Positions 1 through 61,458 of a stretch of DNA of 64,000 bases are shown here, piece after piece. Numbering within the stretch: the stretch's first letter is position 1; each line of letters begins with the position of its first letter. Source of the stretch: Utricularia gibba (Eukaryota > Plantae > Magnoliophyta); NCBI GenBank assembly GCA_002189035.1, contig CM007989.1, positions 4,836,001 to 4,900,000 on the forward strand, in the 5' to 3' direction. Made by a program: the position numbers and the translations under genes. The notes under the pieces were generated by a model that saw only the letters and a program-made list of their open reading frames with translations, ran no database searches and was not told where the DNA came from.

Positions 1-1442
1 TCCCTTTCCTTTGGGTTTGCCTCTACCTATTCCTTTATCTTTGCTTGTGCCCGCAGTTGTAGAACGTATGTTTCTTTGTTGAGCCATTGCTATAATATCG
101 TTTTCATTCAATTGAGCTTGCAATCTGTGAAGTTGTAATTCTTCCTTTAACACCTGTATTTTTTCATTCAGCTTCATTATTTCCAATTGAAAGTTGATAG
201 ATTTTTGTTGTCCAGCAATCAATTCATTGACTTTCATCTTCAATTCAACCTTGTATACAGATTGGTGTGCTACCAAGTCATCTATTCTGTTTTTGTTTTT
301 CTGAATCTGAAACTTCAGATCTGTTATCTATAGAAGAAAAAAAAACTAAATTAGAAAACATAAAAAAACAACTATCACATTTATTAGCAAAATTAGTTTC
401 ATTTTTATTACCTCATTTTCCATTCGTTGAATGTGTTTAAATTGGTTTAAAATGAGTTCTTTGTCATGTTGGCGTGCAACCGAGAGCTCCTCATTAATAT
501 ACATTTCAGCTTCCTCATGAATAGGCACTTCATTCTTCTCATCTCCATTTTCTTGTTCAGAATTCTCCTATACAAAAAATTTTTTATATTGCAAACCTTA
601 TTTATTTGAAGAGAAAATTAAAAATTTAAATAATATTCCTACTTTATTTACCTGTTGTTCATTGCTATTGATGTTTAGCTTAATGGGTTGTTCATAAACA
701 ACAAGCTGATGATGATTTCGCCTTGATATTGGTGTAGACCGCCACTCAACGACACCATGAATGTTTCGACATGCTGTCATAGTGTTAAATAAATAAGTAA
801 AATAACATATTTGAAAAATAATGTAAATTAACAAGACTTACTTCGAATTTGAGCAGACTTCGGGATGATGTCTTCAATCATATATCTCTTTGATTACAAA
901 AGACTTTTTAATGCATGTTTAGTTTCCTCATTCACATTGATTTTTTTCAATACGAGAATTTATAACATCATCCCCTGGATATGTCAATGGATAATGCCTT
1001 GAGATTTCAAAAGATGAAGGTGGTACAATCCATAAAAGAAGTTTATGCTATCGTGCCACAGTTCTAGGTATGTTTTGATAAAATCTATTATTTGGTAATT
1101 CTTGAAAATACCATGTTCCAGTAGCAGCTTTTTTTGGAACAGATAGTGCAAAAAATTTGACAATGAAGTTTCCACATATTCTTCTTCACACAAGTGTAAG
1201 AAAGCTAAGATAATACTATAGGAAGATGGTGCTAAAAACCCAATAGGCAATCTCAAGTAGTTGAGCACATCAAGAGCAAATGGATGAATAGGTAGCCTAA
1301 GACCAGCATCAAATGTTTTATGAGACACAAGCCAAGCATTGGGATGTTCATGAGGGGGATTGGCATCAAGAGGTGTGTTTTGCGGAGCAGGAATTGTCAA
1401 CCAATCGGTTGGGATGAAATATTTAACACGAAATCTATCCAT
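1..1442 (-). pseudogene. Spliced TRP28 (Transposase_28-like) gene with acidic linker and C-terminal coiled coil, running off the window edge
   Basis: ORF 984-1442 has the TRP28 core (FDAGLRLPIHPFALDVLNYLRLPIGFLAPSSY). A frameshift in the A7 run near 1130 restores GTWYFQELPNNRF...R*HKLLLWIVPP. Downstream GT-AG exons lie at about 410-588 (ENSEQENGDEKNE...RMENE) and 327-1; the latter is 109 open codons, coiled-coil-like, ending KGIGRGKPKGKG. Confidence 0.65.
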
Positions 1443-3065: not shown

Positions 3066-3256
3066 GTCCCTTTAAATTAATTTAAAAAATCAAAATAAGC
3101 GCCATACAGTATAAATAAGTTGTTTCGTAGGTATTGTCAGAAATTTATCCATTTATTTTAAAATAAATTCAATGGCATAATTAAAATGTGACATTTCGTA
3201 AGTGTATGTCTAATTGAAAATAAATGGGACGGCTCTTTAGAAATCAGAGACTCCTT

Positions 3257-5141
3257 CTAACAATCTTGTAGGCATACATAATACTCCCATAAGGCATGTC
3301 CCTAACGTATGGAAGGCTGGCCTATTCGATTGTCATTAATATAATTTAGAACATCATTAGGATACTGTAACCCTTCAAGGAAAGTCCGCATCTCACCATC
3401 AACATTGAGTGATGGATCATCCCTATTAGTTGTGATGTATAACCAAGTGTATGCAAGAGTATACTAGCAAAAAATGACTTACCGGATTTTTCATTGATTT
3501 GTGAGGTGAATCATCAATTAATAAGGTATTGTGACGGTCATATCTTGTATTCAATCCATTATTGACAACCCATACACGACTCAACTACTTAATGTAAACC
3601 GTGGTGCTAGGATTATTGTGAACACGTACGCCGGTGTCCGTCGTCATGGTTTGGTCCCATACGAAAATGAGATTGTCAAATAATGAAGGTGGAAAGACCC
3701 ATTTAGTGATTGCTTGTAGTTGCTCCCTACAAAATAAATCACTTACAAGTGTTTGCACCAATTATAAATACCAACAAAAAACAAAATGCAACATACGTAC
3801 CCCCACGGGATGACCATAAGACTACATCAAAATTATCCAAACACCACCTAATAAAATCACGGGCATGTGGACGTAGAAAGACTGCATAATTTGCATCAAA
3901 AGTTACCTATGATATCTCACAAATCATGAATACACATAACATCCAAAAATAAGTATTGTGTTAACGTACTTGATCGGCCATATATGATTTTATCTGGAGG
4001 GATTCGTGACCTTGATGCTCCAGCCCTGTAAACGATGTCTTCTAGCACACCATTTACATCCAAGATAATCAGATTTCGTTGAGGCTCAGAGGCACTAAAA
4101 GGAGGTGTGGTATATACCCAACAACTCTCATGCCAATCCAACTTGTAGTAAAGTTCTTCATTCTCCTTTGTTATAAATTCAAGTCTGTCATCAACATCAT
4201 CAGGACCATGTGTGAGCTCATCCCCTTCAACATCATTCCCATCTTGTATCCTCTCATTCATAGACAAGTCTTCATTCTTTTGGAAGACTCGATGATTTTT
4301 CAACACACCACACCAATAGCGTTTTGTCCCCGTGCATCCACAAATGGTGGTAAAATGTCAACAAAACTCCTTTGCATACTTGAGAAGAGGAGAATAGCAT
4401 CTTGTATATCCCTCTTGGACAAGGTATCAAATCCTACAATAAAAGTAAATTTATTAATAATATATTCAACAAAAATGTTGAATAAGAATATTCAACATGA
4501 TAAATGTAAAAATATTCAAAAAGGGTATTAAAAGAGTGGATTAAAAAAAACACTCAATAATAATACCTTCAATAAAAAAATTCAATACAAATATGGAATA
4601 TTTTTATTCATATTTCTTCTAACAATACAAAGCAAGATTTACCTTTCGCCTTGCCTACTTCGCTCGAATTAGTGTAAATTTGAGGAAATTTGGTTTCCAT
4701 TGGAGGACATATTCAAACAAAACTTGTCCACTATTCTTCAAATCCTCTTCTCACATCGTTCACTAGCACCAACCCTTTTATCCCTTTTAAGGTGTAGTGG
4801 TTATTGTTTACAGTCCTAGAGCATACACTTACAGCAAAAAAATAGCGAAGTTCCACATCAAGACATAACTCCTCACAAATACTAACAAAGGCCAACACAT
4901 ATGAGATAGATCTTGGAGTCAAATGAGATAAAAGAATCTCTAAACATTCTAATATTTCTTCTAAAAAGGACAATAATGGTAAGCGCAAACCACAACGAAA
5001 ATGTTCCGTGCTTTAGGCAAATCCCATTGGACCCACACGGTTTGAAATTTCATTCTCAATCAACTCATCTGGTTCTTTGCCCCAAATCTCATATTCATTC
5101 GGTATCAAGAATCTAGTTCTCAATTTTTCAGAAGTGTGCAT
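3257..5141 (-). pseudogene. TRP28-domain / FCP1-like (NIF, HAD-family) phosphatase fusion pseudogene, copy 1
   Basis: Exon 5141-4643 encodes TRP28 (MHTSEKLRTRFLIP...STEHFRCGLRLP...WTSFV*ICPP). A phase-1 intron (4642-4434) leads to exon 4433-3970 (GFDTLSK...LIILDVNGVLEDIVY...GRS). Exon 3881-3801 reads IFLRPHARDFIRWCLDNFDVVLWSSRG. Exon 3726-about 3483 reads LIFVWDQ...NTLLIDDSPHKSMKNP. The last exon ends ...GEMRTFLEGL...IGQPSI...WEYY. Several in-frame stops and frameshifts are present. Confidence 0.8.
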
Positions 5142-5835: not shown

Positions 5836-6250
5836 TTTTCTATACACCCATATTGCCTCGTGTGGGTGTCTGGAAAGAGAGTCGGATATCCTTTTCTAGG
5901 CACCTACAAGGCCTTGTGTGGGTGTCTTGAAAGAGTGGGTAAGGCCATTTCCAGGCGCCCACTTCTGTTATACGGGTGCCTGGTAAGGAGTATTTGAGAC
6001 AGTTTTCTAGATACCCTCTTCCCTAATGTCGGTGCCTCGGGAGAGTGTACAAGAAAGATTGTTGGACGCCACCTACAAAATAATGCATTGTGTGGGTGTA
6101 TGGGAAGTGTGATTTCCAGGCACCCACTTTGGTTATATGGGTGCCTGGGAAGGAGTATATGAGACATTTTTCCAGACACCCTCTTCCCTAATGTGGGTGC
6201 CTTGGAAGGATGTTTGCGAGTCTGCGATCGAATTCCAGGCACCCACTTTT
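5836..6250. repeat. Array of about 7.5 short hairpin units (period about 55 bp), consensus TTCCAGGCACCCAC...GTGGGTGCCTGGAA
   Basis: Units start near 5836, 5893, 5948, 6003, 6061, 6113 and 6168, with a half unit at 6232. 5948-6041 is repeated at 6113-6207. Isolated AGGCACCC motifs also occur at 5600-5670. Confidence 0.8.
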
Positions 6251-6353: not shown

Positions 6354-6788
6354 CTAGGATAAGGTTTGATTTCTTTTCACAGCCTCCAGCCAATCCTTTA
6401 GACAAATGTATGCCTCTAGAGTCTCTACGTTCAATCTGGAGCGCTTGTGATTAAGAACTCGTCCTCCTGTACTAAACGCACTTTCAGATGCCACTGTAGA
6501 TGCTGAAGATGTTAGAAGATCTTTGGCCATTCTAGCCAAGATATGGTAAGTAGTAGAATTTGTCTTCCACCAATCCAATATATCAAAGTTGTCATCATCA
6601 ATACACTTAACAATAGGAGTATTATTGTAAAGTGTAAGTTGGTCAACAGAGTTTAGTGAGGATGATGAAGAGGAAGACACAAATGAACTATGCTTCCTAT
6701 GAATAATGTCCATTGGATTGCGACTACCAAGTGTCGAATTGTTACATGCTTTAGGAATATGAACACTAGGATCACTATATTTTCTCAA
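6354..6788 (-). mobile_element. hAT transposase C-terminal (dimerisation domain) fragment
   Basis: FDILDWWKTNSTTYHILARMAKDLLTSSASTVASESAFSTGGRVLNHKRSRLNVETLEAYICLKDW is the typical hAT dimerisation motif. It is truncated upstream by Copia sequence. Confidence 0.9.
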
Positions 6789-7999: not shown

Positions 8000-9220
8000 T
8001 GTTGCGTGTCGTTTCCTTAACAAATTTTAAATATTTATAAAACGTAAAAAACAAAAAACTGTAGTACGAGTATCGATCTCAGAGAGTTGTTTTTCATGAA
8101 AAGTGTTTGTAAGAAACTTTCACAAAATGTCATGGTTTTGCAAAAAGGGGTTTTTGAGATAAAGAAATAAAAGTTAAAACCTAAATGATGGGCCTTGACT
8201 ATAGGACGTTTTTTCTGGGAATGAGATTCCATCTCCTTCCTTTGTCCATCCTTGCCTCGGTTTTCACTGATTTCTTCTGAATAGCTGGTTATAGGAGTAA
8301 GGAATAGTCTACTCTCCCTTACACTCTGATTGACAAGGAGGCACGGGAATAGTCTCATGTGATTCCCCCTTGGACGATTAGGAAAACAAGAGGATTGACT
8401 TCAAAACTGAATTGCGCGCGTGTGCTCAGTTGTTGTCAATGGCCAATGGCAGGTCCGAGGTCACAAACAATCCACTACTTCCCTCGAACCGGCATGGTTG
8501 GAGTTGGTGCTCTTCACCTCAATCTTCACCAAAATCCGCGAGTGGCCTACTACTCATGGACCTTGACTTGGAGTTGACTGCAACAATATGCTGGAAGTAT
8601 GCAAAATCCAAATTGAATTCAACGAAGAACCGATTGTATTGCTCAAAACTTGGAAGGAAACTTCATCTACTCCCAGAAACTATAGGGTTTTAGCCACAAA
8701 TGACCATGAAAACAGAAATGAAATTAAATAATAAGTGTTCTTGGAGGAAGAACTCAAAAGTTCTAAGTCTAGAAATAAAGGTTGAAATGTTCGAAATTAA
8801 GTGCTCCAAGTGGCTTTTATATCACTCCCCACGTGCATTAACTCCTTTGGGTCCCCTTCCCATCATTCATTCTGTCTTGCGTGCACAAGCAGTTTTCCTT
8901 TGCGTGCAAGTTAGTGCCCAATCATTGTTGCAGACTTTGACATGCCGTAAGTTAGGAGCCTTGATCAGTGTCAGTCTTCCGCCCACAATCGTTCCAAGTC
9001 GCGTACAAGGCATGAAAAGTCAGACTCTAACCACCTGCAATACTCCACGACAGTATCCTGGCATGTCTCGGTCAATGTGTGAGAAAAAATATAGAAAATA
9101 TATACAAAATAGGAAAATACGAATTTTCTAATAAAATTCAAATACTTAATAATAAGACTCTTAAACACTAGATTAACACCTAATAATACTTAATAAATAA
9201 CTAGAAAATGACACTTAATA
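8000..9220 (-). mobile_element. Solo LTR, family A (same family as the Athila LTRs at 51115 and 58684)
   Basis: Begins tgttgcgtgtcgtttcc as at 58684 and ends gaaaatgacacttaata (CA decayed to TA). Perfect 5-bp TSD ATTAA at 7995-7999 and 9221-9225. Confidence 0.9.
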
Positions 9221-9249
9221 ATTAATGAAACTAATGACTTTCGACGCAT

Positions 9250-14548: not shown

Positions 14549-16690
14549 ATAATTTATTCATTGAAGTTCCCATGAAAATACACACATATTTTCTAAGAAA
14601 AATGTAGTCATTATGCATATGGAAAGAGAGTATTAAAAGAAGAATTATCTTGTTAAATATTTGGGCTAAAGGCAAGAAATGAAGAAATTTATATCAAGAA
14701 CAATGTCGCATTTATAAAGTTATATGAGAATTGCGGATTTTCATTCATGTTTGTGCATTGTTTCAAATGGAAAAGTATTCAATAGTCGCTCAAAGAAATC
14801 ATTTCATCATATCAACAAAGGTGAAAATCAAAATCATATCAAGTTTAGTAGATTCATATAGAGATGTAAAAAAAGTTTCGAATGCAATTACAACGGAAGA
14901 AAAAGTGGTTAATTTATCGAGAAAATTTTTGAAGTCATTAAATATTGAACCAACTAATGGATAAAAATATTTTTATTATACATATCACTTTATTAGATTG
15001 ATTCTTTATATAGTATGATACTCGTTGGAGGATAATGGTTGTCGCAACATATGACGCATAATTGTTATGAAATTTATAATTCCAATTCAAATAGATAAAT
15101 AAATGATATTTCGTCGAATGTCATGCAAGTATTTAATACATTACATTTTATCACTCTAATTATATCCTTAGTAATGATATTCATTTTTTCTTTGTAATTT
15201 ATCTAAGGCCAAACTTCTTCAGGTTTTTAGATCGATGTACGAAAATGATTGATGTTAAATTTTGGTTCTCTTTGATTGTTTTACATTAGATTTACATATA
15301 AATAACCAACGTTATTCTTGTAGATCATAAATAACCATCTTTATGCATAAACAGAAGCTTTAGCAACATTAAATTTAAAAACTTTCTGTGAATTTGGAAC
15401 AATAATAGAACATTCAAGAATCACTCCAAAATTGAATAATGAACATATTCTTTTATACAAAGAACTTATCTATATTGACATCTTTTCACCTTATTCATTA
15501 GGTAAATAATGGAATATTTTTCTTTTCTTAAAAGATGATGCCAAAGGATGCATTATAGAGTTATGTGTACGTTATATTATTTTGAAAATTTATGTGAAAT
15601 GGATTGCATGCCACTTACATTGAAATATTTCAATGTATACAATCTCAATTCAAGGTCATGAACATTGAAGGTCCAAGAATTAATGAAAATAAATATATGT
15701 AATTCTGTTGTATTAGGAAAATTTAATTATGTGAACTTATCATTAATTATATTAAGAAAATATAATAATTGAAATATGTAATTTTGATGAATAATATGAA
15801 AAAATTAAAATATTTTTACATTTTTTCTTTTGAAAAAGGTTAAAAATTAAAAAATTACTTTCAGAAAACCAGAGTTTTTTAATAGGAAATTTTATAAACT
15901 TTCTGAAAGGATATATGTTTTTTTTCTGAAGAATTTATTTTTTAGATACATTTATACGTTATATACAGTATATGAAAGTTATATTATTGAACTTTTATAT
16001 TTTTCAAATAATTTTATAAAATATTTTTAACTATATATCATGTTTTCAAAATAGTCAGCGAATATTTTTGAAAAAAAAGATTTTTGTAATACAATAGATA
16101 AATTATCAAACAAAGAATTCGATTTGATTTTCAAATTGGGTTTTCAATGGAATGGATATTTCATGGATTTTATTTCGAAATCTGATTTGGAAACACAGTT
16201 CTAACATATTGACCCTGCATTTAGGGTGATTGATTGAACATTTTTCCGAAATAAATTGCTTTGTGTCATTAACAAGTTTTTTATTCTTTAATGCAAATAA
16301 ACTTAAACATGTAATATTTTTATCAACTTAAAAAGTATGCTTGTAAGAAACCCAGATATTAGTTATCGTGTTTTTAAAATGATGAATAATAATAACTATC
16401 TATTTGCCTGTTTTCATTGTGATGAGCCTGGGCGCGCTCTTCTACTTGGTGTAGTTACTCAACTGCACACGAGGTATTTATTAAACGCTCCAACGTTGGT
16501 GGAGATTTTCGGCGTACGACTTCGTTAGGAAAGCGTAATCCTCGGAAGGGAGGAGGATTTGTGTCCATAATTCTTACAAATTTTCCCATAAACATATTAT
16601 TTTCCGGAAGTTAATTGCAGTAAATTTGGTCAAAAAGGCAATTGACACTCCTTTTTTTGAAAAAACGAATGTTGCTGCGATTTCGTCAAC

Positions 16691-16698
16691 TATTTATA
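16691..16698 (+). promoter_or_regulatory. Candidate TATA box of the polygalacturonase gene
   Basis: TATTTATA about 60 bp upstream of the ATG at 16756. Confidence 0.35.
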
Positions 16699-16755
16699 CA
16701 GGATGCCCCCGTCGCTCTCGGAAACCCAAATAAATTCCTATCTCGACCGCGCGTC

Positions 16756-18501
16756 ATGAAGCATCATCTCTCCCTTGCAGCGGCGTTGGGGTTTCTCTAC
16801 ATTGTCGCCGCCGCAGCCGCGCTGCCCGACGATGAGAAACTCAATTACCAGGCGATCGCCTCCTGCAGGAAACACGCGGCGGTTATCACCGAGTTCGGCG
16901 GGAAAGGCGACGGGAAGACCGTCAACACTGAGGCGTTCGTCGCAGCAATCAAGCACCTGGGCGGGGTCGCCGCGGACGGCGGCGCTATCCTCATCGTCCC
17001 TCCCGGAACATGGCTCACTGGATCTTTCAGTCTCATCAGCCATTTCACTCTTTACATCCACAAGGACGCTGTTCTTCTGGGATCCGAGGTTGGTATCCTC
17101 GGATGGGCAAGTATTTCGACTACAGATATCCGATAACTCTCCATTTGATTTTTTTTGGTAGGACGAGTCCGCGTATCCGTTGCTCGATCCTCTTCCGTCC
17201 TACGGAGTAGGCCGAGACGGTGGGAAGAGATACGCGAGTCTCATCTGGGGGACGAATCTGACTGACGTCTCCATTACAGGTACCCCAAACTACATGATTA
17301 CGCCGTAATTAGTTTTTTCTTATAATTTTTGTAATTGTGATTGGGCAGGGGGCAACGGGGTGATCGACGGCCAGGGCGCCATCTGGTGGAAAAAAATCAA
17401 GAACAAGGAGCTGGAGAACACGAGACCTTATCTGATTGAATTGCTGCACTCCAACAACGTGCAGATTTCCAATTTAACCCTGGTTAACTCCCCTTCATGG
17501 CATGTTCACCCCACTTACTGCAGGTAAAATTTTTTTGACGTTCTTTCGATCCTGATCTGTTCCTGAGGGCTGAGGGTTGGATGCGAATGCAGTGACGTCA
17601 TCATCGAGCACATTACAGTGATTGCTCCCGTAGACTCTCCCAACACCGACGGCATCAATCCAGGTAAAAGATAATAAACTTACTCCACCCCTTTATTTTG
17701 ATCCTTTATTTTAATGAGGTCGTTGGGTTTTTCTGTGTGTCAGATTCTTGCAACAACACGAGGATTTGGGACAGTTCTGTGGTGTCTGGGGACGACTGCA
17801 TAGCGGTGAAGAGCGGGTGGGATGAGTACGGAATCGCGTACGGCATACCGACGGAGCACCTGAGCATTAAGCGCTTCCACTGCAAGTCTCCAGACAGCGC
17901 AGTCATCGCCCTCGGGAGCGAAATGTCGGGGGGCATACGCGACGTTCGTGCAGAGGACATCTTCGCCGTGGACTCCCAATCGGGAGTGCGGATCAAGACG
18001 GCACCCGGCCGCGGCGGGTACGTGGAAGATATTTTCGTCAGAAACTTCCAGATGTACTCGATGAAGTACATGTTTTGGATGACCGGCGCGTACGGTTCGC
18101 ACCCCGATGGTCACTGGGACCCGAAAGCGATCCCCGTCGTGAAGAACATCAATTATATGAACATGCTGGGAACCAACGTCACAATGCCGGGGCAACTCGC
18201 CGGAATTGATGATAGTCCTTTCACCGGAATCTGCATTCAGAATGTGACCGCGGGGTTGGCCAAGGGGACGCTTGATTCGCAGTCGTCGTGGTGGTCCTGG
18301 GAGCAGTTCAATTTGCTGAAGAAGAAAGATTTGCCGGCCTGGAATTGCACGGACATAGAAGGAGTATCGAATAACGTTGTGCCCAAGACGTGCGCTTTGC
18401 TGCCGCAGAAGAACGTGGACTGCAGTTTCCCGGCGGATGTATTGCCCATTGATCAAGTAGAGCTTAAAAGCTGCGCCGTACGATTGTACCGTGGGCATTA
18501 A
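16756..18501 (+). CDS. Polygalacturonase (GH28, GSEMSGG-type clade), 5 exons: 16756-17088, 17162-17279, 17349-17523, 17593-17663, 17744-18501; 484 aa
   Basis: GT-AG introns with consistent phases. Hydrophobic N-terminal signal-like segment. Motifs SPNTDG, SGDDCIAVKSGWD, GSEMSGG and RIKT. Confidence 0.95.
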
Positions 18502-21223: not shown

Positions 21224-24141
21224 ATGATATTTGATTCAATTTATCTAAAAAAGTCAACCGGTTTTATCAAAAGCTGTTGTGGGTTTGCTTCCAGCGACAT
21301 CTTCTACACATGTATCTAAAAATATTGGAAGCCATCTGGATATCTTTTCTCATTGTGCATTACCCTTGAATCTAACTGTTGCTCTGTTTAATTGCTTTTC
21401 TTTATTCATTAAAAGAATATAACTAAAATAAACTCAAATAATAGAATTGTGTAGAAATCAGAATGTTAGATACAACTAGTAGAAAAATTTGGAGTAAATT
21501 TATCATAATAATTCTCATGCATAAAACAAATACTAGATGTAGAAAACAAAAATCTTAACATCTATTTAATATATCAAAATCGTATGAGAAGATAAGCAAT
21601 TTTCGAACAACTTACAATTAACATAATCCATCTTATCCCATTCTTAATCTTGACCAAAGGAAAGTAAGAACAAAGAAAAAAATAGCATCAACCTAAAAAT
21701 ACCCAATATTGACGAGAACATGATTTGAATTTCTTGTGATAGGGCTTTGATATTCTTTAATGAATTGAGAACATTGTGAATAGAAAGATAAATTCATCTA
21801 CTTTTTTAAGGAAGAAATTAAATAAAAAGATAAAAATCAGTATCCATCTCATTTCATTTATTGTTTGAGAATACTTCTATTCTTGTAGTTGTTGAAGTAG
21901 AAGTTAATAAAGGTGTGTAGAACATCTTATTACAAATGAGTTAAATGTTTTTTTTAATAGTGGTATCTCTTGAATTTTTTTTATTTTTAGTGTACTTTAT
22001 AAATTTTATAAATGAATAAACTAATTTAAATATACCTAGATATCTATAAATTATTAAACTAATTCGCTGGGTAAAATATACAATTTCAATATTTGTCTAA
22101 TTATATTGACTAAAGAGACAATGCATTGAAGATAGCGAACGTACTTAATATTGCTATATGTTGTTATATAATATGACTGGAACATCGATATATTTATGTA
22201 ATTGATTTGTAACAAACCATATTATTATTTGTTTATAAATGATAAAAATGTTAGATGTAAAAAAAGATATGATATAATAGAGTTAATTATCATATTGATT
22301 TTCATTTGTAATAAGTCATTATAAATCAATCTCTCAAATGAATAATTCATCAACTCCTCATTTTCACTCACTTCTAGTCCTTTTTTGTTATAGTCAATGT
22401 CATATTGTGTATTCTATTGAACAAATGACTATTTTTTTTTCTATTTTGTCAAATTATATTTTATAAATATTATTTGTAAAACATATATAAATGAATAAAT
22501 GTTTTTTTATTTCAAGTGTACCTAAACGTAATGTTACTTACATTACATATCCAAACTTTTATATTACTTCAAATATTTTTAAACATTCATTTTCCTAAAT
22601 AAAATATGATCTTAACAATTTTTTTGACCATTTATTGCAAGTATGTGCATAAAAAAATAGTTAAAAATAGAATGATTACAAAGTTTAATATTTCATCATA
22701 TATATTATTCTATGTCATTTCTTTAACAAATTTATATATATATTCTATTTTGTGTTACCATTCTTGAAAAATAAAAAGTTAAAAAGATCATTGTATACAA
22801 TAAAATTATCATATCAAATAAAATCATAATCTCAATTCACTCAAAAAAAGTATTCAAATGAAAATGTTTAATTAATAGAAGTTGGAGATGAATAAACTCT
22901 ACTTCTAATGTTTTAGTAAGATGCAAAAAATCACAAATATCCAATATATCAAATCTTATTTAATATTATCAATAATCTATTGAATCAATAAGTAAAGTTA
23001 AGTAAAAAGCTAAAAGATAAAAAATATTAATTTGATACCAGCATAAAAGTAATTCAAGTGGAATTGATTGACCTCTTATTCTTCTTTAAAATCCATATGT
23101 TATGGGTAAAATCGGTATCAGAGGCGAGATCGATTTTAGGGTGATAGATGAGGTCGAGGATATCGCGCTCAATTACATTTTTCACAGTTGTTTCGGCCTG
23201 ATTGATTGAAACAAGAGTGGGCGAAGATTTTTACGTGGAAACCGCCGGACGACGGAAAAACCACGGAGCTATTGAAGCTCGCCGAAGAATATTTCCACTA
23301 GGAGGTGATCAAGAAGATGATACAAGCCCCAGAGTTTTTAGCATCCAACCCCATTTCCATTATGGTTCCTTCTATTTATAGAAGAGCTCGTTCTGGCCGA
23401 ATCCTGACGTCTACCAATATCGGTTGCTTTCTCCCCCTGCTATACAATCTCGTTTTTCAGATATCGGCCACCTGTTATGCCGTAATTCGACCGCTTTTCA
23501 GACTATGCCATATGGCCATATCTGTCAGATTTCTGATAGATATCGGTCTGTCGTCTGGCATTCTCCCTTCAAGATCTCTTTCGGCAGCCTTTGAGGAGCC
23601 GATTACACTCTATTGATTTATCCCCCATCATTCAGCCCCTCTGATTTGCCAATATTGGCTCTTTCGGGACGAGTCGAAGAATCAGAATCACTACAATGCC
23701 AATTTCTGAGGTGCCGCTTTCCACGAATGAGCTGCAGACTGCTTTGGCCCGACACCTCCGTCACGTGTCAGCTCATCAACATGCCACGTTTTTTCCCGCT
23801 CATTTTGGGTACCTCAAACGTCACGTCGCTTTGTCTCTTGAATATCTCTGTTATAAATATGCGCAGCTCCTGTCTTTTCTCTCCTTTGCTTTCTTTGTTC
23901 CCTCACGAGATTCCAGCGTTCTTCGAACTCCGCCATGCTCGCCGCCGTGTTACCCACCGGAGACTACACATTTTCCAGGTATCCACGCCCTCTCTGCAAC
24001 TTTTTGCATTTCTGAGTCTGCCTACCTTTCCGTTAGGTCTTCGAATCTTCTTTCGCCCCATTCTCACTTTTTCTTAGGGTTTCCACTCTTTTCTTCCAAA
24101 TCCCTTGAAAAAACTTTCCTTTTTTTATTCCTAAAAACGAT

Positions 24142-25900
24142 ATGGGTAGGAAATCTAGTGAGTTGAATATACCTGCTATTCGGTCCAAGTATTCGATTCC
24201 TGAGGAATACGTCATTTCCCAGGCGAGGGATAGCCAAATCCCTTGGGGGTCTGGGGAAGGACCCCTCTCCCGTTTCAACCTTCCAATCCCCCTCGCCTAC
24301 TTAGAAAGCGGCCCCCGCTTTCCTCTCCATCCTCTACTTGTTCAATTTCTCAACATGTTTTCGATTACGCTCTATTGCCTCGCCCCCTAATTCGATTTTC
24401 TGCTTCACAATATTTCTCTTCTATTCGGCTGGCATGGACCCGAACATGATGCTAGTTGATTTCTTCCAACTTTTCAAGTTCGCTGTTCGCAAGGCGAAAC
24501 GCCTGATGCATGGCTTCTCCCACTTCCAATTTCGTCGGTTTGAAGACCACCCCGACTTCATTTTAAAAGCTCCCGATACTCACCACGACTGGTGGTCTTC
24601 TTTCATCTGGGTCGCTCCCCCATTGGGGGCTAGATGGAATTTTCCAGTTAAACCCCCAACCCCTTTCAAAGTAAAACTCTTTGGTCGTTTCCGCCCCTCT
24701 GACAAGTCTCGTAGGGAGGTATATCATAGACTGGGTGACTGTTCGATTAGGTTCGAGTCTCGGGCCTCAATGCTCTCGCGTGATTCCTTACTGGCCTGCA
24801 GGATCCTTGGTCGTAATCGGGATGGGTAGTGGCCTGACTTCGTTATTCCTCCAGGTTCTGAATTAGAATACCATCACCTCCTACAATCTCCACCTCGTAT
24901 CCCTCCTGAGTCGGCAATGCCTCCCGCTTCTGATCCAATAGCCCCCACTCCCTCTGATTCGGTTCCCGAATCCTCCGTTCGACCCTGCTTCTCCGGTTTT
25001 TGTATGCAGCGGAAGAGATGGCACAAAGGAACGCCCTGGAGGATTCAGTGATGGCACGTTTTTCAGCCGAGATGCGTCGAATGCAAGAATTGGATGCGGT
25101 TCCTTCTGCGCAGGTTTGTCTGATTTCTGGTGGCCCGTTGCTAAGAGTATCTGACTCTAACCTTTTGACATTCCTCCCAGGCAGATTCTCCCTCAGCTCA
25201 CTCAGATGCTGCCGGTCATCTTCCGAGGATCAAGTAGTTGAGGTTTCCGGGACTTGGGAATCAACTCCTCCTCCGTCGGTAAAAGGAAAAGAAAGGCTCC
25301 CGCCTTCACCGATGCCCACCGACAGTCCCGTTCTCGGCATTGGATTTATTTCGGTCGGTGCATCCACATCGGTTCCTCTGAGTAATGCAGGGGGTTTCTA
25401 CTCCTCCCATTGAGGTAAGGGAGGATCCCGCTCTTCCCCCTCTTCATTCCCCTTGGAGCTGCGAAGGGCCTTAGAAGAGGCTACTCCCAATCCTTCGGGA
25501 GTTCAGTCGGAAATTATACTTAAAGGAATTTGACATGTATTCTCGCTCTTTTTTGGGATCATATATATCCGGTTCCTAACTTACCGATTGTATCTTAGGC
25601 TTTGACCTTCAGATGGGGGATGGCCAAGGAAATGGGATCCCATTCGGAGGAAGTCTCAGCTTCAAGCTCAAATCGCGGCTCAAGATGCCAAGATAAAGTT
25701 AATGGGGGAAGAAAGGAGTGTATTGAGAAGTATTGACGACGCCAACTCCGTGAAAGAGAGTTTTAAAGTGCAACACGAGGTAGCGGAGGCAGAGTTGAAA
25801 CAAGCCAAGGATTGCGCTTCGGTCTTGGAGGCGGAGCTGCTCAACATGGAGGCATCTCGCAGGAGACTTTTGGGGGAACAGCCCCATAACATCCACTCCC
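24142..25900 (+). pseudogene. Antisense additional ORF of the Tat element: TRP28 domain, Pro/Ser linker and coiled coil (spliced, frameshifted)
   Basis: GPRFPLHPLLVQFL / PNSIFCF...HHDWWSSFIWVAPP in ORFs 24142-24390 and 24338-24829. Coiled-coil EAELKQAKDCASVLEAELLNMEASRR in 25702-25920. Orientation is opposite to gag-pol. Confidence 0.8.
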
Positions 25901-25919
25901 CATCGATCGAATGGGCATG

Positions 25920-28900
25920 AGAATGGTAGAGAGGTCAAGCCGTTTACTGGTTTCCTTGGTATACTTGCATGGTATTGGCATACTCTGCATTTCTTCATCA
26001 TTTTGGTAATATCCCGCTTCATCATTGGCCAATAATATCCGGTTCTCAAAACTTTCCTACATAAGGATCGTATCCCAACATGGCTGCCGCATTCCCCTTC
26101 ATGCAGATCGGTGATAAGTTCTTGAGAGTGCCTTGTCCCGATGCACCTCAATAGGGGTCCATCTATCGATCTTCGGTAGAGAATTCCGTTCACCAGTGTA
26201 TATCTAGTGAGAGTGCCTTTTTCCCCGTTTTGCAGGTATCGGATGTAGGGCGATGTCCAATCTTCAAGGGGGCTCAGCTGCGGAGAGATGTCATTTTCCA
26301 ATCGTTGGGTAATATGATTCACTGTCTGCGAAGTTACCGAAGGCTGATCCCGTAACCGGATCGTCACGCTCCCCTCCTTTAATTCCGGAAAACCCGCTGC
26401 AAATCTGGCGAGGCTGTCCGCAGATCAAATTTGACGTGCGACATGTGACAAGGTGTACTCTTTGAAGGTCTTTGCTAACTCCTTTACCTTAGTACAGTAT
26501 AGAGCCATCATGGGATCATGGGTTTCATATTCACCCGAATACTGTCCTTGTACTAGCCGTGAGTCCGTATAAGCGTCGAGCTCTACAACACCAAGCTCCT
26601 TGGCAATTTTCATCCCTTCAACCAAGGCCTCATATTCGGCTACATTGTTGGAGGCAGGGAATACTTCACCGTGATGTAGATATGTTTTTTGTCCCAAGTT
26701 CGGATATCGATTCCTCCACCGGCCCGGTTGTATGTGGAGCTGTCGATGTACATTGTCCATCGGTCGTTGCTTTCTACGAAACGGTCAATAGGTCTGGTCA
26801 TTTCGACCACGAAATTGGCAAGAGGTTGGGGCTTGATTGCTGTTCTCGACTTAAACTCAATATCCATCGTACTCAATTCGACCGCCCATTTGGCAACCCT
26901 TTCAAAAATCTCTGGTCGAGACAGGATATTCTTCAGAGGTTGATTTATGAACACCACGATGTGCCGATCTTGGAAATATGACATCAACTTGGTGACCGCC
27001 ATCTTTAGTGCCAAGATGAATTTTTCTGTCACCGTGTACCGGGTTTCAGCCGGTAGTAGGACCCTCCTCACATAATACACCGGCAAGTGTTTATCTTCCG
27101 AGATGGTCGTCAAGACTGCGCTGACTACAACGGGCGATATCGACATATAAAGTTCCAGAGGCTCCCCTGCCTTCGGAGCCACAAGAAGCGGGGGTGATGA
27201 GAGACATTCCTTGAGTTTTTCGAAGCCAATCCGGCAATCTTCGCTCCATTCTAAAGCATTTCCCTTTCGCAGGACCTTGAAGAAAGATGCCGACTTATCG
27301 GCTGACCGAGATATGAAACGGCTGAGGGCAGCCAATTTACCCGTGAGACTTTGGTACTCCTTGACTGTCCGTGGGGTTGCATTTCGCATATAGCTTTAAT
27401 CTTCTCGGGATCGGCTTCGATTCCTCTCTCCGATACATAATGCCCAAGGAATTTTCCACTTTGTACCCCGAAGCAACATTTCAGTGGGTTGAGTTTTAAC
27501 CCATACGACCGACATAAAGAGAAATAGGAGTCCAAATACGCTAAATGGTCCTCTTCATTCATAGATTTCACGATCATATCGTCAACATACACTTCCATCG
27601 AGGTACATAGCAACAACCTCTGATAAGTTGCTCCAGCATTCTTCAAACCGAAGGGCATCACTACATAGCACCAAACCCCATCCTTGGTATAGAAGGTGGT
27701 TTTCGGTTGGTCCTTCTCGGCAACGAAGATTTGATGATATCCCGAATAGGCATCCATGGTGCTCAGGAATCAGGATCCAGCAATAGCGTCCACCAGCTTA
27801 TCAATCTTTGGCAAGGGGTAAGGATCCCTTTCGCAACAGGCATTGAGGTCGGTGAAATCGACGCACATCCTCCATTTTCCCCCGGGCTTTGGGATGACAA
27901 TTGGGATGGCTACCCACTCGGAGTACTGGATCTCCTTTACGTATCCAGCTTCGCGGAGCTCCCTCGTTTTTTCTTTGATAATTCGGCACTTCTCCTCGGA
28001 GAAATGCCGTTGCTTCTGTCGAATTGGTTTTGCCCCCGGTTAGGTATCAATATGATGCTCAGCAACGAATCGATCAATGCCTACAAAGTCTACAGCAATC
28101 CAGGAAAAAATATCGGCATTCCTTATCAAAAGCTCAGCTAACCTTTTCTCGAATTCGGTGTCCAGGTTAGCACCAATGCGGGTTGCCTTATGCGCATCTC
28201 CTAGTTGCACCCACTTGTACCCCACCGGTTTCATTGCTTGTATGGGAGGTTCCCATGGTTCCTTGCCCACCATCATCACTCTCGGCTTTTTCGCATAGGG
28301 ATCCCGACAGAAAGATACATAGCAAGACCGGGCAGCTGGTTGGTCGATATCCAACGTGCAGATGCCCCTTGGTGTTGGAAATTTAATTTTCAGATGCACA
28401 GTTGAGGGTAGCATACTGAGTTGATTGATGTCTTGATCCCTATCGTGGCTCGGGACTCTGCCAGCTCGTGGAGCTCCCTCTGCTACTTTTGATGGGAACT
28501 TCGGATATCAATTGCCTTCGTTCCAGGTCCGGTCGTTACGTCCTCTTTTCCGGTCCATCATCGGTGCAGGGTTCCGCACCGCATTGTTTATTCCCCTACC
28601 AGCATGATATTGCTCGATCATCCTCTTCATTACTCGGCAGTTGGCAGTATCATGCCCGGTGGTCCTGTGTATCTCGCAGTAGGCATCTGTTCTAGTGGGT
28701 TCCACTTGATATACCTCACTGCGCTTATTCGGCCTGGGGCCCCGTATAGGTTGGGTCTCTTGCTGTGGGACCGGATGAATCTCCACGCGGTTTTTCATCT
28801 CGGCCCTGAGGTTGTCGTCAACCTGGATGTATTTCATAATTTTCCTTAGCAATTCTCCGAGATTCTTTTGTGGGGACTTTGATAGACTCTTTCCCAGTTT

Positions 28901-29272
28901 CGACATTCCTAAGGCCCGCTTCATTATTTCCACCCTTTCTTTTAAATCCAACTGGACATCTTGTGCCAGGTAGTTGAATCGGTCGATGAATCTTCGTAAG
29001 CTCTCCTTCCTGTGATCGTATCGAATAGAATATAAGGCTGCCTTTGAAGGCGGGGCTTCGATGTTGACAGCATATCGGGTAGTAAAGAGTAACACCAACT
29101 CTCGATAGGATGCCACACTACATGGTTCTAATTGTTTAAACCAAGTTTTCGCTCCCTTTTGGAGTGAGCAAGTGAACAGCTTACATTTCATGGCTTCCGA
29201 ATGTCGAACTGTGGACATCCTCATATTGAAGTCGGTTACATGTGATATGGGGTCCCCCATTCCGTCATACAT
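25920..29272 (-). pseudogene. Tat gag-pol remnant (gag, RT, RNase H, second RNase H, N-terminal integrase); protease and most of integrase deleted
   Basis: Gag YDGMGDPISHV...KTWF. RT DAYSGYHQI and YVDDMIV. RH YYVRRVLLPAETRY. Second RH SNNVAEYEAL...TDSRLV. Integrase LHEGECGSH...CRVC...WGVDVMG then breaks off. Multiple frameshifts. Confidence 0.9.
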
Positions 29273-31399
29273 GGGTAGTCCGTCCGGGACTTTGAATCCC
29301 CTCTCGGGTTCTTCCCCGATTAAGTCATCCGAGAAAGGGTCATAGCGCAGCTTTGTGGTTCCAACTGCTCCTTCAACTCCGCTCTTTAGGGCCAGATCAA
29401 TATCGACCAGAACATCCCCTCTCCCAATGCATACATTCTGATCGAAAACGTAATTCGACCGCTTTTCAGATTGTGCGATACGGCCATATTTGTCAGATTT
29501 CTGACAGATATCGGTCTGTCGTCTGGCATTATCCTTTCAATATCTCTTTTGGCAGCCTTTTAGGAGCCAATTACGCTCTATTGATTTATCCCCCATCACT
29601 ATACTTTTTAATCTTTTGGTTTAAATTCTATTGTTGTGTTGCATACTTGGAAAAATATATCCATTTTCCTAGTTTTAAATTTTTTCAAACTTGTCTTAAC
29701 TTTTTCTATGTACTATTATGCCTTGAATCTAGCTATCATTATATATAGTTTACTTTTTGTTGTTGCTAAATGATTTATTAAAAAAAATTTCCCATTTTCC
29801 TTGTGCACTTGCCCAATTGATATTTTGTTTCCACCTCATATTTCATAACATGTGTTTTGTATTTTATGTTGTAAATCGAAATATTGCTGCAATATTACTA
29901 TTTAGAATATGGAAAAAAATAATGTCAACTAAATCAGTCCACTTTTTGAAAAGAAAATAAAACAAAAATAAGTTTGAAATTGTTAAAAGCCATACTAAAA
30001 TCAAAGATTTTTTCTAGTAAATAAATCCTTATATAATATAAAATTTCTAACATAATATATATCATAATACGTCTAAATGGTAAAATAAAGACAATTGATT
30101 CTTTAATTCATCTAGTGACATATTACTTTTAAAATTTTATCATTATAACTAAAGATTGATCATACGTTTGATATGTGATGTAATAGTTTTTGATATTTCT
30201 ATTGAATAAAATGTTTATCATGATGAAAGAAATCTATATGTTATACTAAATTAGTTACACTTTCAAAATGACAACAGTAGTTTTGATCAAATGAATGTAA
30301 AGATGGAGAAATTCATGCTAATGATGAAAGAATATTTAAAGTTAAAGGAAATGAAGAAAAGAACAATTAAAACACAAGACTATGATTTTTTTTTCACAAC
30401 TTGTATATTTTTAAAATTTTTGAATAAATATTTGAAATTTTTTTTTGATGGATGAAATATATTTACTGCATATGCAATGTTTTATGTTATATTAAAAATG
30501 AAATCTAAATATAAATTAACGATATTCAATATATTTTTCTAAATTATATTTTTGAATATTATATATATGGCATGGTATTGCAATATTATTTTAATATTAT
30601 ATTTGAACCAATTTTATGCCTTTGAAAAATTGTATCATGTAAATTAAACTCACACATTTTTATCAAATACAATATAAGAAATTCTAATTATTTTTAATTT
30701 TATTGTTAATAATTTAAATACAAGGTTTATTTTTCTCACATATGAGTGATAACTGATAAGATGGGTAATTGTCTAAAATATACAGCATTAATCTATAAAT
30801 AAAAAAATAACTTATTTCCCTAATTAAAAGTAAAAATGATATTCTGAGGATTTTTTTTTTAATTGGAGACTAAAAATAAAAAAATATACGTTCATGATAT
30901 TCTGTCCGATGAAAAATTATTAATAGCTGTCTATTTTTATTGTCCGATTTACTAAACAGACATACCTATCTTGAAATATTTAATATATTTATCATGATTC
31001 TTACAAATACACATGGCTATTTGTATATTTATTCTTGATATTTATCACGAACGACAAATTTACATTCAAGATATTTAGACAATATTATTAATTTGAAATA
31101 TCTAGGAAATATGGCATAGAGCATTCAGTGGCCAGCACGACAAAAATCCTCTATACTCTTCCATTGTGTGTTTCCTAGCAGCACCACAACATATACAAGC
31201 AACAAGTAGACTTTATTCCTTCCTGTTCAACAAGAAACACACGAGCGCAGATACTGTGATACAGCGACCACAAAACGCCCGCATCCGCATCGGCGAAGCG
31301 AGCTTCTGCGGACTACCGGTCAACACTGATCGTAAGACCGAAGCAAACGTCAGGGACGGGACTTACATTTACATACATACAACACGGAAGAAGCCTAAG

Positions 31400-38854: not shown

Positions 38855-39888
38855 AAGGAATCTATCATAAGATGTAGCACTATAAAACAATAAACGCATG
38901 GTATGGTATGAATATTTCATTCTGCATCTTCTCCTAAAAAACTGCATTTCACTGCACATTGCACAAACTACTTATCATAATTCATAACACTATTACACCA
39001 TTATATTTTTTGTACATGTGTATTTTGTGTAATCCATTCAACCGTGTCTTTTAAAATTCATATGATTAAAAACTCATATCTCATATGAGTTTTATTAATT
39101 ATAACTTATTTTAGATCGATTATTCTAAATACATCAATTAAATAAAATATTATTTTAAATACATATTTATAAAATTTCGTATATCTAATATTTTTTTAAC
39201 TTTAATTATATTTATATAATACATATTTATTAAAATATAAATAATTTAAATATATAATTAAACTACCCTAAAACTAAAAATCATTATTTTGATTCTTACA
39301 ATTCTAAAATATATATATAAATCATTGAAATAATAAATAAAAATCGTATCTATATTATATGTTTTGGATTTTATTAAAAGAAATACAAAAAAAATAAAAA
39401 AAATAAAATTAAAACATGAGTTTTAAAATAAAAAAAAATAGATTTGGATCAAAAATCTAGTATGACACCTGTTAATCTACTCATGAAAAATCATTAGGTT
39501 TTAATGATTGTTGGTCTAATTAAGTAAAAACACCAGTTTTTTATGCATCAATTAAAATTGAAACGATTTTTATATATTTAATGATTTTATGTGAAAAACA
39601 AATTGATGCCAAAAGTGAAAAAAAAGAAGGTAAATTCAGCCTTGAATGAAATTCTCCTTGAGCTATGGTGCTTGATTAATTTATTGTCTTCAATCACTTA
39701 AAACAGCTATTAATTGATTGTAATTAAAAATCAAATTGCTTTTCTAACCACAATACATTAGGATCTCTTTGACACGTATTTTGATTTTAGAAAAATGTTT
39801 CAAAATTAATTCTATTATTAAATATGAGTAACTTAGGTTACAAAAGGAGCATAAATCTAGAATTAATTTTAATTTTTTTAAAAAATAA

Positions 39889-40990
39889 TGATGGTGATTC
39901 TGCAGGTGAACAGAAACCATCTAAGTAATAAAATAAGATCGTATCCACAGAGAATTGTTATTAGAATTTTCTTTTCAAACAAAGACTCAAAAAGACCGAA
40001 AACAAAAGAAAGATTTAGTTTTAAAAACAAGAAGAAAAGTGGCATTGGACCTATGATCCATCTTGCTCAAAACTCGCCCAACTTGTATGTGTAAACCTTG
40101 AAGACTGACTTGGTTGCGCAAGTTCTGGGGATGTTATTCTAAAATAGTGCTACTCGATGACCGTTATAACACCGTCCCTCGTTTAGTGGGATTATGGAAT
40201 CAATCACGTCACCAGAGCCATTTCACCTCTTGTGATAACCCATGTTTTCTCTACACCCAAATCTAACCCCTACACCTCACACTTCGTAGACAGATTAGAC
40301 AGAATGTGCCTTACCAACGATGTCCAATTGAGCCCTTCTCCTTAAGTGCTTGAAGCCAACCTTTGATTCTCCCACACTCCTTTAGGGTTATATGGTACTA
40401 AAGAGCACGTTGGTAAAGAAAACGTTGCGAAAAACAGAATCAAACCTCAATTTAAATGTCGAAAAACATAGAAAAACAGTCATACGTGCAAGACTTGCGC
40501 AAGCAAGGCTTCACCACAAATCCTCAGCCGCAAGCACCTACACGCGCAGACTCGACTCAAATATGAAAATAGATACGAAAATAGGAAAGATTCAAATTAA
40601 AAGTGGTCAAAGACGTTTCTAATGATTGAGAGGGTGGGGTATTTATATGAGTGTAGATTCAAGTATTCGTATTGAGCTTATTCGATGGGTTTAGATAAGA
40701 TCTTCTATCCAAATCTTTTATCCAAATCTTCAAAGATCTTATTCACATCTCTATCTTATCCACGAATCTTGGACCAAATCTTCATCGTTTGACCGAGTTT
40801 TGGGTTGGGATTCGTGGCCCATCAAGTTCATAATTTGGTGGATCTTGTTTCTTCTCAAATTAATCCAAAAGTACCCTAAAAATCCACAAAATACAATTTC
40901 TCTCCAAAAAGATCAAAGTAGTGTGAAATATGTAAAATCAATTGAGAATAATAAGAAAGTGCGATCTAAGATAAGCAAAAACAACACTCA
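39889..40990 (-). mobile_element. LTR, family C, reverse orientation, outer end eroded
   Basis: Reverse-complement homolog of 47652-48843 (tgatggtga(t/a)tctgc...). The right boundary is approximate and no TSD was found. Confidence 0.8.
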
Positions 40991-50784: not shown

Positions 50785-51114
50785 ATGCTAAGTGATTATA
50801 ATTTTACTCAAGTATTATGCCATATAAGATCTGAGATCCCAAATGAGCGTCCTAACATGTTTGATTTTATTGATCCATTGTATTTCAACGAGTGGGTTGG
50901 TATTGCGGAGAGAGTTCATTGGATTTTCAACAATAGGCCAGCCTTCTTAATTTGTCCATATGTTGTGTGGCCAATTCTATACCAGTAAGGTTTAAATTTT
51001 ACTATTGAATAACTAGGAGGAATTGTAACTTACATACACAACCTATTATATAAGCAAGATGCAATGGGTGTTCGTGGTCTGCTGCAATTTTGGAGATGCA
51101 TCTAGTAGGATTAT
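50785..51114 (+). pseudogene. Possible Ulp1/C48-protease-like passenger fragment of the MULE
   Basis: FDFIDP...FLICPYV followed by (M)QWVFVVC resembles the FIDP...APYN-HWxLxV pattern, but the His is absent. Cut by the LTR at 51115. Confidence 0.3.
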
Positions 51115-52148
51115 TGTTAAGTGTCATTTTCTAGTTATTATTTAGGTATTATTATGTATTAATTAAGTGCTAAGTCGCCCAATTAGGAGTCTTATTATTA
51201 AGTATTTGATTTTTACTAGAAAATTCCTATTTTTCCATTTTGTGTATATTTTATGCCTTTTTTCTCACACTTTGACTGAGGCATGTCAGGAGACTATCAG
51301 GAGTGTTGCAGGAGTATTGCAGGTGGTCAGACTCTGAGTTTTCGTGCCTTGTACGCGAGTTGGAATGATTGTGGGTGGAAGACTGACACTGGTCAAGGCC
51401 CATGACTTACGGCATGTCAGAGTCTGCAGCAATTATTGGGCGCTAACTTGCATGCAAAGAAAGGCTGCTGGCGCACGCAAGACAGAAGGAATGATGGGAA
51501 GGGGACCCAAAGGAGTTAATGCACGTGGGAAGTCATATAAAAGCCACTTGGAGCACTTAGTTGAGAACTTTTGAACATTTTTTCTTGTACTTAGAACTTT
51601 TGAGTTCTTCCTCCTCTCAAGGAGGAAGAACACTTAGCTTTCTTTTAATTTCTGTTTCTATGGCCCTTTCGGGCTAAAAACCTTTAGTTTCTGGGAAGTA
51701 GATAAAGTTTCCTTCCAAGTCATGAGCAATACACTCGGTTCTTCACTGAATTCAATTTGGATTCCGCATACTTCCACGCATCTTGTTGCAGTCTTTCTGT
51801 AACGACTCTCAGTCAAGGTCCATGAGTAGCAGGCCACTTCTCGCGGATTTTGGTGAAGATCAAGGTGAAGAGCACCAACTCCAACCCTGCTGGTTCGAGG
51901 GAAGTAGTAGATTGTTTGTGGCCTAGGTACCGCGACAGTGGACAGGTTGTGACCTCGGACCTGCCATTGGCCATTGGCAACAGCTGGGCACACGCGCACA
52001 ATTCGGTTTTGAAGGCAATCGAAGGCAATCCTCTTGTCTTCCTAATCGTCCAAGGGGGAATCACATGAGGCTATTCCCGTGCCTCCTTGTCAATCAGAGT
52101 GTAAGGGAGAGTAGGCTATTCCTTGCTCCTATAACCAGCTATTCGGAA
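51115..52148 (+). mobile_element. Family A LTR, 5' part only, in opposite orientation to the adjoining Athila internal region
   Basis: Starts TGTTAAGTGTCATTTTCTAG. It is the reverse complement of about 58950-59818 and breaks off at attcggaa|ctctagg (52148). Confidence 0.9.
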
Positions 52149-61065: not shown

Positions 61066-61458
61066 TCCAGGCACCGCGAACAAAGGTTGCAGTGTCTAAA
61101 ACATGTCTTCCAGACACCGAGAGCGGCATTCTACACTACCTGGAACGCATGTCTCCCAGACATTGAGAGCAGCCATTTGCAGTGCCTAGAAGGGGTATCT
61201 TGTAGACACTGAGACCAAAATTTTGCAGTGCCTGGTACACTGGTCTTCCAGGAACCGATAGCGGCATTCGACGATGCTAGGAACACATTCTATCCAGATA
61301 CCGAGAGCAGGAATTTGCAGTGCCTAGATTGCAATTCTTCCAATGTGCATGGATATAGTGTAGAGCATGCAATAGTTGCACCTATACGTATGAGTGAATG
61401 GTGTGTGTAAACCTGAAGCATCCTTCAGGTTATCCTATCTTTCCAGGCACTGCAAATT
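61066..61458. repeat. Array of short hairpin units (period about 45 bp), consensus TTCCAGRCACYG...GCAGTGCCTGGAA
   Basis: Units start near 61066, 61109, 61155, 61199, 61246 and 61292, with a terminal half unit TTCCAGGCAC at 61441. Confidence 0.75.

Follow-up and report, generated by a model that had tools for sequence, protein, structure and literature searches.

A decayed gene joining a TRP28 module to a NIF-like domain in transposon-rich DNA of Utricularia gibba

Described systems and the locus

TRP28 (PF04195, Transposase_28), a domain without a known function that is among those most often found in transposons of flowering plants, has been regarded in the literature as an antisense open reading frame (ORF) specific to Retand. 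PF04195 was found in 23% of Retand elements by Neumann et al. (PMC6317226), and a survey of 2025 reported antisense TRP28 ORFs in 97% of Retand clusters, often near tandem arrays; there the function of the domain is given as unknown and DNA binding is predicted, its partner domains include Smc, topoisomerase and others, with no phosphatase given, and its similarity was not found outside transposable elements (TEs) or with other known TEs (PMC11963269). Here we describe a locus of Utricularia gibba in which a TRP28 exon is spliced to exons for a candidate NIF/FCP1-like HAD domain. It occupies the minus strand from 5141 to 3302 (copy 1) of a 64,000-nt stretch of contig CM007989.1 (assembly GCA_002189035.1, positions 4,836,001 to 4,900,000), which is called the window throughout, and was first noticed in a sequence-only reading that proposed a transposon-borne fusion of TRP28 with a phosphatase and linked TRP28 to the extra ORFs of Retand elements, a link that the two papers cited above document. 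With a probability of roughly three in four, we regard 5141-3302 as the remains of one copy of an accessory gene of plant mobile elements, a gene that has introns and exists in many copies.

Compared with the TRP28 extra ORFs of Retand (PMC6317226; PMC11963269), the locus has the same N-terminal domain family, scored above the Pfam cut-off, and arrays nearby, whereas it splices TRP28 to a NIF-like HAD domain and lies sense-downstream of hAT and Harbinger transposases instead of antisense to a gypsy pol. With the NIF/FCP1/SCP small carboxy-terminal domain (CTD) phosphatases (PF03031) it shares colinear motifs I to IV, the NIF spacing, the nucleophile Asp, the motif II Ser and the motif IV Asp-Asp; it departs from them in having D-x-N-G instead of D-x-D-x-T, and in that no piece scores at the Pfam cut-off. 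A looser parallel is the PMD and PP7-type module (MAIN/MAIL1 with PP7L, and the MAIL3 fusion), which affects TE silencing and gene expression and in which a transposon-derived domain of unclear biochemistry is likewise paired in cis with a phosphatase-type domain (PMC7156037). However, the families differ on both sides, PMD against TRP28 and PPP metallophosphatase against HAD, and MAIL3 is a host gene whereas the window gene belongs to multicopy mobile-element DNA, so that the parallel is an analogy only; Pfam scans of all pieces returned neither PMD (PF10536) nor a PPP-type phosphatase. VANC of the VANDAL Mutator-like elements (PMC5735166) resembles the locus as an accessory gene of a DNA transposon with dense short-motif arrays in the non-coding DNA of the element, but it has no sequence relation to it, and its motifs keep one orientation and have proven binding, while those of the window alternate and are known from sequence alone. 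The TRP28-NIF-like gene thus belongs to neither the PMD-PP7 nor the VANC family. A literature search found no paper with both PF04195 and PF03031, or with a TRP28-phosphatase fusion, and the family looks undescribed, in agreement with what the sequence-only reading had supposed.

Gene structure, copies and past selection

The short ORFs of the locus link up into one spliced gene through GT-AG junctions (Table 1), and every element that had been quoted in favor of this joining was found on the minus strand. The junction of intron 1 reads AAA G/GT...TGTAG/GA TTT GAT (the slash marks the splice site), and exon 2 ends in codons for LIILDVNGVL, in which the Asp of motif I (L-D-V-N-G) lies at 4060-4058 and the Asn at 4054-4052; the Asp-Asp of motif IV, within LLIDDSP, lies at 3515-3510. 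One part of the earlier model is probably wrong. The last intron proposed at 3482-3423 would be only 60 nt long and disrupts the frame, and four contigs from other genomic copies carry different, coding-looking sequence just upstream of 3430 that is in frame with the C-terminal part. Since other copies have an open frame through this stretch and the 60-nt intron breaks the frame, the last exon is probably continuous from 3726 to 3302. An intact protein would be of about 470 amino acids, in which a TRP28 module at the N-terminus is followed by an acidic linker and, at the C-terminus, by a domain with a NIF/FCP1-like HAD fold.

Table 1. Features of the two gene copies and of their surroundings, in window coordinates
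Feature	Positions	Strand	Details
Exon 1, TRP28 module (copy 1)	4643-5141	-	ATG at 5141; N-terminal RF-IP motif, PF04195 core, WTSF-CPP tail
Intron 1 (copy 1)	4434-4642	-	209 nt, GT..AG, phase 1; from TRP28 to linker/HAD exon
Exon 2 (copy 1)	3970-4433	-	Conserved FD-LSK segment, acidic linker, LDW-ES helix-like stretch, HAD motif I
Intron 2 (copy 1)	3882-3969	-	88 nt, GT..AG, phase 1; frame kept into exon 3
Exon 3 (copy 1)	3801-3881	-	IFLRP...FDVVLWSS (HAD motif II region); 28 amino acids scored
Intron 3 (copy 1)	3727-3800	-	74 nt, GT..AG; frame one base off in copy 1
Last exon (copy 1)	3302-3726	-	LIFVWDQ, candidate motif III Lys, LLIDDSP, GEMRTFLEGL...IGQ; stop 3304-3302
Copy 2 of the fusion gene	59819-60876	-	TRP28 exon, intron, exon 2 with LDVN
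Motif array, copy 1	5866-6242		About 10 CCAGGCAC/GTGCCTGG-type motifs, both orientations, some hairpins; 0.7 kb upstream of ATG
Motif array, copy 2	61066-61450		CCAGGCAC-type motif, 46-nt period; upstream of copy 2
hAT transposase C-terminal dimerisation domain	6357-6788	-	PF05699, 87.5 bits
PIF/Harbinger transposase pieces (DDE_Tnp_4)	61790-63057	-	PF13359, 32.4 bits (61790-62038) and 19.2 bits (62263-62718)

The single-gene model gains most from a second copy, located in the window by tblastn and phmmer of copy 1 pieces. Its PF04195 score of 19.8 bits is below the cut-off and its TRP28 core is 48% identical to that of copy 1, with which exon 1 is colinear; both copies have the start M-x-T-S-x-K-L...R-F-x-I-P, the W-T-S-F...C-P-P tail, the FD-LSK beginning of exon 2 and the stretch from LDW-ES to the LDVN of motif I. 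The intron between the TRP28 exon and exon 2 interrupts the identical codon in the same phase in both (G/GT...AG/GA TTT GAT), though in copy 2 it measures 72 nt (60390-60319) against 209 nt, and the exon 2 donor A/GTACG recurs as well. No DNA similarity between the two copies was detectable by blastn. Because the start, the phase-1 intron and the exon 2 donor are kept in copies that have lost all detectable DNA similarity, the locus is better read as one gene than as two neighbors, and a single spliced unit of TRP28 and NIF-like parts is supported by this comparison.

A comparison of codon positions, of the dN/dS type that had been suggested for the copies, was also informative. Over 297 aligned codons the protein identity is 45%, the identity at the first, second and third codon positions is 0.57, 0.65 and 0.34, and the proportions of differing nonsynonymous and synonymous sites are 0.38 (pN) and 0.85 (pS, saturated). 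Neutral drift to such saturation would have erased the protein similarity, and therefore the linker/motif I exon was kept joined to the TRP28 module, as coding sequence, over a long period; the pattern argues that the fusion was maintained by selection before it decayed. This bears on the possibility that the gene is a meaningless chimera, formed when a transposon captured a host NIF-like fragment beside a TRP28 ORF (Pack-type) and never a working protein. Plant DNA transposons do often capture host gene fragments, copy 1 is full of stops and no RNA was seen, yet copies saturated at synonymous sites keep their protein identity over both domains, and the start, the intron phase and motif I persist in both copies while the lesions are private to each. 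We consider such a chimera very unlikely.

Copy 1 itself is dead and encodes no such protein now, as had been noticed from the sequence. It has at least six in-frame stops, three in exon 1 (5015-5013, 4733-4731 and 4715-4713) and three in the last exon (3587-3585, 3481-3479 and 3466-3464), together with three frame breaks: a single base near 4327-4332 in exon 2, the joint of exons 3 and 4, and a break near 3483-3490. At two of the stop positions most other genomic copies carry another letter in the DNA contigs, and the extra base of the exon 2 break is present in nine contigs. Since the disabling lesions of copies 1 and 2 are not the same, and the other genomic copies differ at two stops and at the frame break, the ancestors of the gene were open.

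Copy 2 is truncated, ending about 15 nt after the exon 2 donor, at 59818, against gypsy-family DNA. Two other copies in the window of that gypsy unit continue jointly for about 190 nt past the equivalent point, so that the junction is a rearrangement breakpoint inside a longer repeat unit and not the end of an element; for the same reason, copy 2 was rejected as an extra ORF preceding a gypsy gag. Exons 3 to 5 of copy 2, sought below the gypsy block, were not found. That block is itself unusual: the gag-pol region at 52151-59041 (minus strand) lies within 51113-59818 and is flanked by inverted, not direct, copies of 862 nt with 97% identity, a third copy of which occurs at 8000-9222 (82%), and it may represent two elements tail to tail or a rearrangement.

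The family is multicopy, since 942 contigs of a DNA run of the same organism (X5) align to the 2.3 kb between 3100 and 5400 at a likeness of at least 80%: 65 at 99% or more, 195 at 95-99%, 342 at 90-95% and 340 below 90%, with 10-34 contigs covering each position. Half of the differences of these contigs are C to T or G to A, the pattern expected for methylated repeats. Read depth shows a dip in intron 1, and immediately below the gene, at 3100-3250, it drops about tenfold, from approximately 1000 to 93. These data are relevant to the alternative that the gene is domesticated, or belongs to a host family with dispersed members, and happens to reside in transposon-rich DNA with coincidental transposases beside it. 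No element ends were defined, and the adjacency to transposases concerns only the two copies of the window; however, this alternative does not lead one to expect that copies should number in the tens, at 80-99% likeness and with a decay rich in transitions, nor that in 2/2 copies a transposase should lie upstream, on the strand of the gene, with the same motif array separating the two. We give this explanation a very small chance.

The probable NIF-like domain

Domain scoring covered stop-free pieces, which are short, and was judged against Pfam cut-offs of 26.2 bits (PF04195) and 21.8 bits (PF03031). Within this scope the identity of the TRP28 exon is clear, with 35.9 bits (E 8.6e-09) for the piece 4734-5003. 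The NIF assignment is another matter: PF03031 was matched by exon 3 only, with 16.9 bits (E 0.005) over profile positions 37-61 of 160, below the cut-off. What upholds it is a series of other signals. For the motif I exon, the two best named look-alike clusters of the ESM-Atlas are NIF (0.89 and 0.88), with other HAD families lower, and a 34-residue piece with LLIDDSP (3483-3584) gave NIF clusters at 0.92, for 83/100 hits. A two-copy profile of the motif I exon had KdsC HAD phosphatases as its three best matches in the PDB (E 0.3), aligning LDVN-VL with the KdsC motif I LDVDGVL so that the Asn stands opposite the second Asp. The order and spacing of the motifs are NIF-like (LDVNG, about 30 residues, FLRP...VVLWSS, FVWDQ, Lys, LLIDDSP), with HAD motifs I to IV colinear. 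These signals are weak one by one, but they are independent and colinear, and the C-terminal half is probably a NIF/FCP1-like HAD fold. The assignment made in the sequence-only reading therefore holds for the motif series and the Atlas clusters and falls short in the Pfam score.

The same reading had taken the domain for a phosphatase, and in this respect motif I speaks against it. The domain retains the nucleophile Asp, the Ser of motif II, a candidate Lys for motif III and the Asp-Asp of motif IV, but the general-acid Asp of motif I is replaced by Asn: copy 1 has D-V-N-G and copy 2 has D-V-N-R, and the D-x-D-x-(T/V) of a competent HAD phosphatase occurs in neither copy. Because the same Asn is found in the very diverged copy 2, D-x-N is a family trait and not a product of decay. 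A HAD protein that lacks the general acid/base Asp is expected to bind its substrate with very slow turnover or none. The domain thus looks less like a phosphatase than like a pseudophosphatase or a crippled enzyme; Tim50 is an example of the non-catalytic NIF members that the TRP28-NIF-like family would resemble.

Mobile-element setting and significance

The window, with about 37% G+C, is AT-rich and dense with mobile elements. Copy 1 starts 1.2 kb downstream of a hAT dimerisation domain on the same strand, the remainder of the hAT transposase not being seen near it, and copy 2 starts 0.9 kb downstream of PIF/Harbinger pieces, also on the same strand; one end of the latter element is beyond the window and the other was lost at the 59818 breakpoint. 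The carriers look like cut-and-paste DNA transposons (hAT and PIF/Harbinger) and not like Tat/Retand. Between transposase and gene, both loci have an array of CCAGGCAC/GTGCCTGG motifs that alternate in orientation. The arrays were defined by motif counts, and Tandem Repeats Finder reported neither of them. Exact 8-mers of the motif fall in the two arrays in 7/7 cases over the 64 kb, and the 9-mer GTGYCTRGA was observed 11 times against 1.06 expected, 10 of these in the two arrays. The DNA around the arrays is not alignable between the loci. Given that the array is present at both, with hAT at one and Harbinger at the other, the array appears to be conserved with the gene while the type of transposase is not. 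No Rfam family was found in the window.

TRP28 also occurs elsewhere in the window. An intact-looking ORF of 152 amino acids (987-1442, minus strand; PF04195, 42.7 bits), 1.8 kb downstream of copy 1, is followed by long coiled-coil-like frames (window 1-1442) and resembles the TRP28/Smc-like antisense ORFs of Retand, with no NIF part. At 23481-29598 (minus strand) there is a Retand-like Ty3/gypsy element with gag, reverse transcriptase, RNase H, integrase and direct end repeats of 150 nt (91% identical), with an antisense TRP28-like ORF on the plus strand (24305-24826) between the integrase and the 3' repeat. Since this element carries such an ORF, both kinds of TRP28 gene coexist in the window.

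It must then be asked whether copy 1 is itself an antisense extra ORF, placed in the region between pol and the 3' long terminal repeat (LTR) of a plus-strand Retand whose gag-pol would lie before the start of the window, and not the cargo of a DNA transposon. In Retand, antisense TRP28 ORFs and tandem arrays share a pol-3'LTR region of 2.9-6.6 kb (PMC11963269), and the repeat array upstream of copy 1, the further minus-strand TRP28 ORF with coiled-coil frames at 987-1442 and the Retand-like element at 23481-29598, which has an antisense TRP28 ORF of its own, would all suit this arrangement; moreover, the window starts too near copy 1 for any plus-strand pol to show. Against it, a hAT domain lies directly upstream of copy 1 on the same strand, and the depth drop at 3100-3250 suggests that 987-1442 is a separate unit. 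Copy 2 is preceded by a Harbinger transposase, without an antisense pol, and its contact with gypsy DNA is a breakpoint, so that it does not lie antisense between pol and a 3' LTR as Retand extra ORFs do. Finally, phosphatase domains are absent from the extra ORFs listed in the survey of Retand elements. On this evidence a Retand origin of copy 1 is improbable. The earlier proposal that the gene is transposon-borne is borne out insofar as the gene is multicopy and sits beside transposase genes; its neighbors are hAT and PIF/Harbinger, and element ends were not found.

Several results weigh against the preferred reading or against parts of it. A search around the gene in the window revealed neither convincing terminal inverted repeats nor target-site duplications, and because of this the carriage by hAT and Harbinger elements amounts to adjacency and not to proof. 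Three presumed RNA runs gave no contigs on the gene, which is no proof of silence. An exhaustive HMMER search with the 112-residue exon 2 piece against 1.84 billion representatives had 0 matches, as had each of the word-indexed protein searches with exon 2b, the TRP28 piece of copy 2 and the 152-residue TRP28 ORF; none of ten window ORFs was present in a protein collection by exact look-up, and two metagenome scans with two-copy profiles returned no relatives. The word-indexed searches were subject to length limits, and plant transposon proteins are few in the collections, so that the blanks are weak and show neither absence nor novelty. As for the domains, PF03031 had no match in the other stop-free pieces of copy 1 and reached the Pfam cut-off in no piece, a PDB sequence search with single pieces gave no matches, the C-terminal piece of 43 residues gave no usable match in the ESM-Atlas, and D-x-N speaks against normal phosphatase turnover. 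An AlphaFold model of the TRP28 piece (from a 4-row alignment) was unusable, with a predicted local distance difference test (pLDDT) score of 38.6, and DNA binding by TRP28 therefore rests only on the published prediction (PMC11963269).

In intact copies of the accessory gene, the TRP28 module would bring the protein to the DNA or chromatin of its own element. That it might bind the motif arrays there is a tentative idea, which we find possible and on balance doubtful. The NIF-like domain may act as a module that binds phosphoproteins or dephosphorylates them very slowly, and could thereby change the transcription or silencing of the element, aiding the former or countering the latter; given the fold, the CTD of RNA polymerase II (Pol II) would be no more than the obvious candidate ligand. 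Any part played in anti-silencing or at the Pol II CTD is speculative. A bolder version, which we consider unlikely, would see in the array and the TRP28-NIF-like gene a self-contained accessory cassette swapped among elements of unrelated superfamilies (hAT and PIF/Harbinger), its TRP28 module being common with Retand: TRP28 would bind the CCAGGCAC arrays and the Asp-to-Asn NIF-like domain would hold a phosphoprotein, for instance a silencing factor or the Pol II CTD. Together they would make up a system that, like VANC, controls transcription or anti-silencing of its own element, here by means of a pseudophosphatase.

Two further features of the window lie apart from the gene. Inverted repeats of 675 nt, 88% identical and about 7.6 kb apart (39887-40561 and 48171-48845), may delimit a DNA transposon with long terminal inverted repeats, and ORFs at 16642-18498 (plus strand) with matches to polygalacturonase (PF00295, 47.7 bits) and to pectate-lyase-like proteins are probably the only host gene of the window.

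Being dead, copy 1 adds little by itself. What the window contributes is the occurrence of hAT and Harbinger settings next to each other, a motif array conserved at both loci, evidence of past selection from codon positions and a corrected 3' gene model. If it is true that a selected fusion exists in cut-and-paste transposons behind a conserved array, this would provide the first functional handle on TRP28, through a partner with a predictable class of ligand, and it would be evidence that accessory modules pass between transposon classes. It would also be a second, independent case of the pairing of a transposon domain with a phosphatase that is known from PMD and PP7L.

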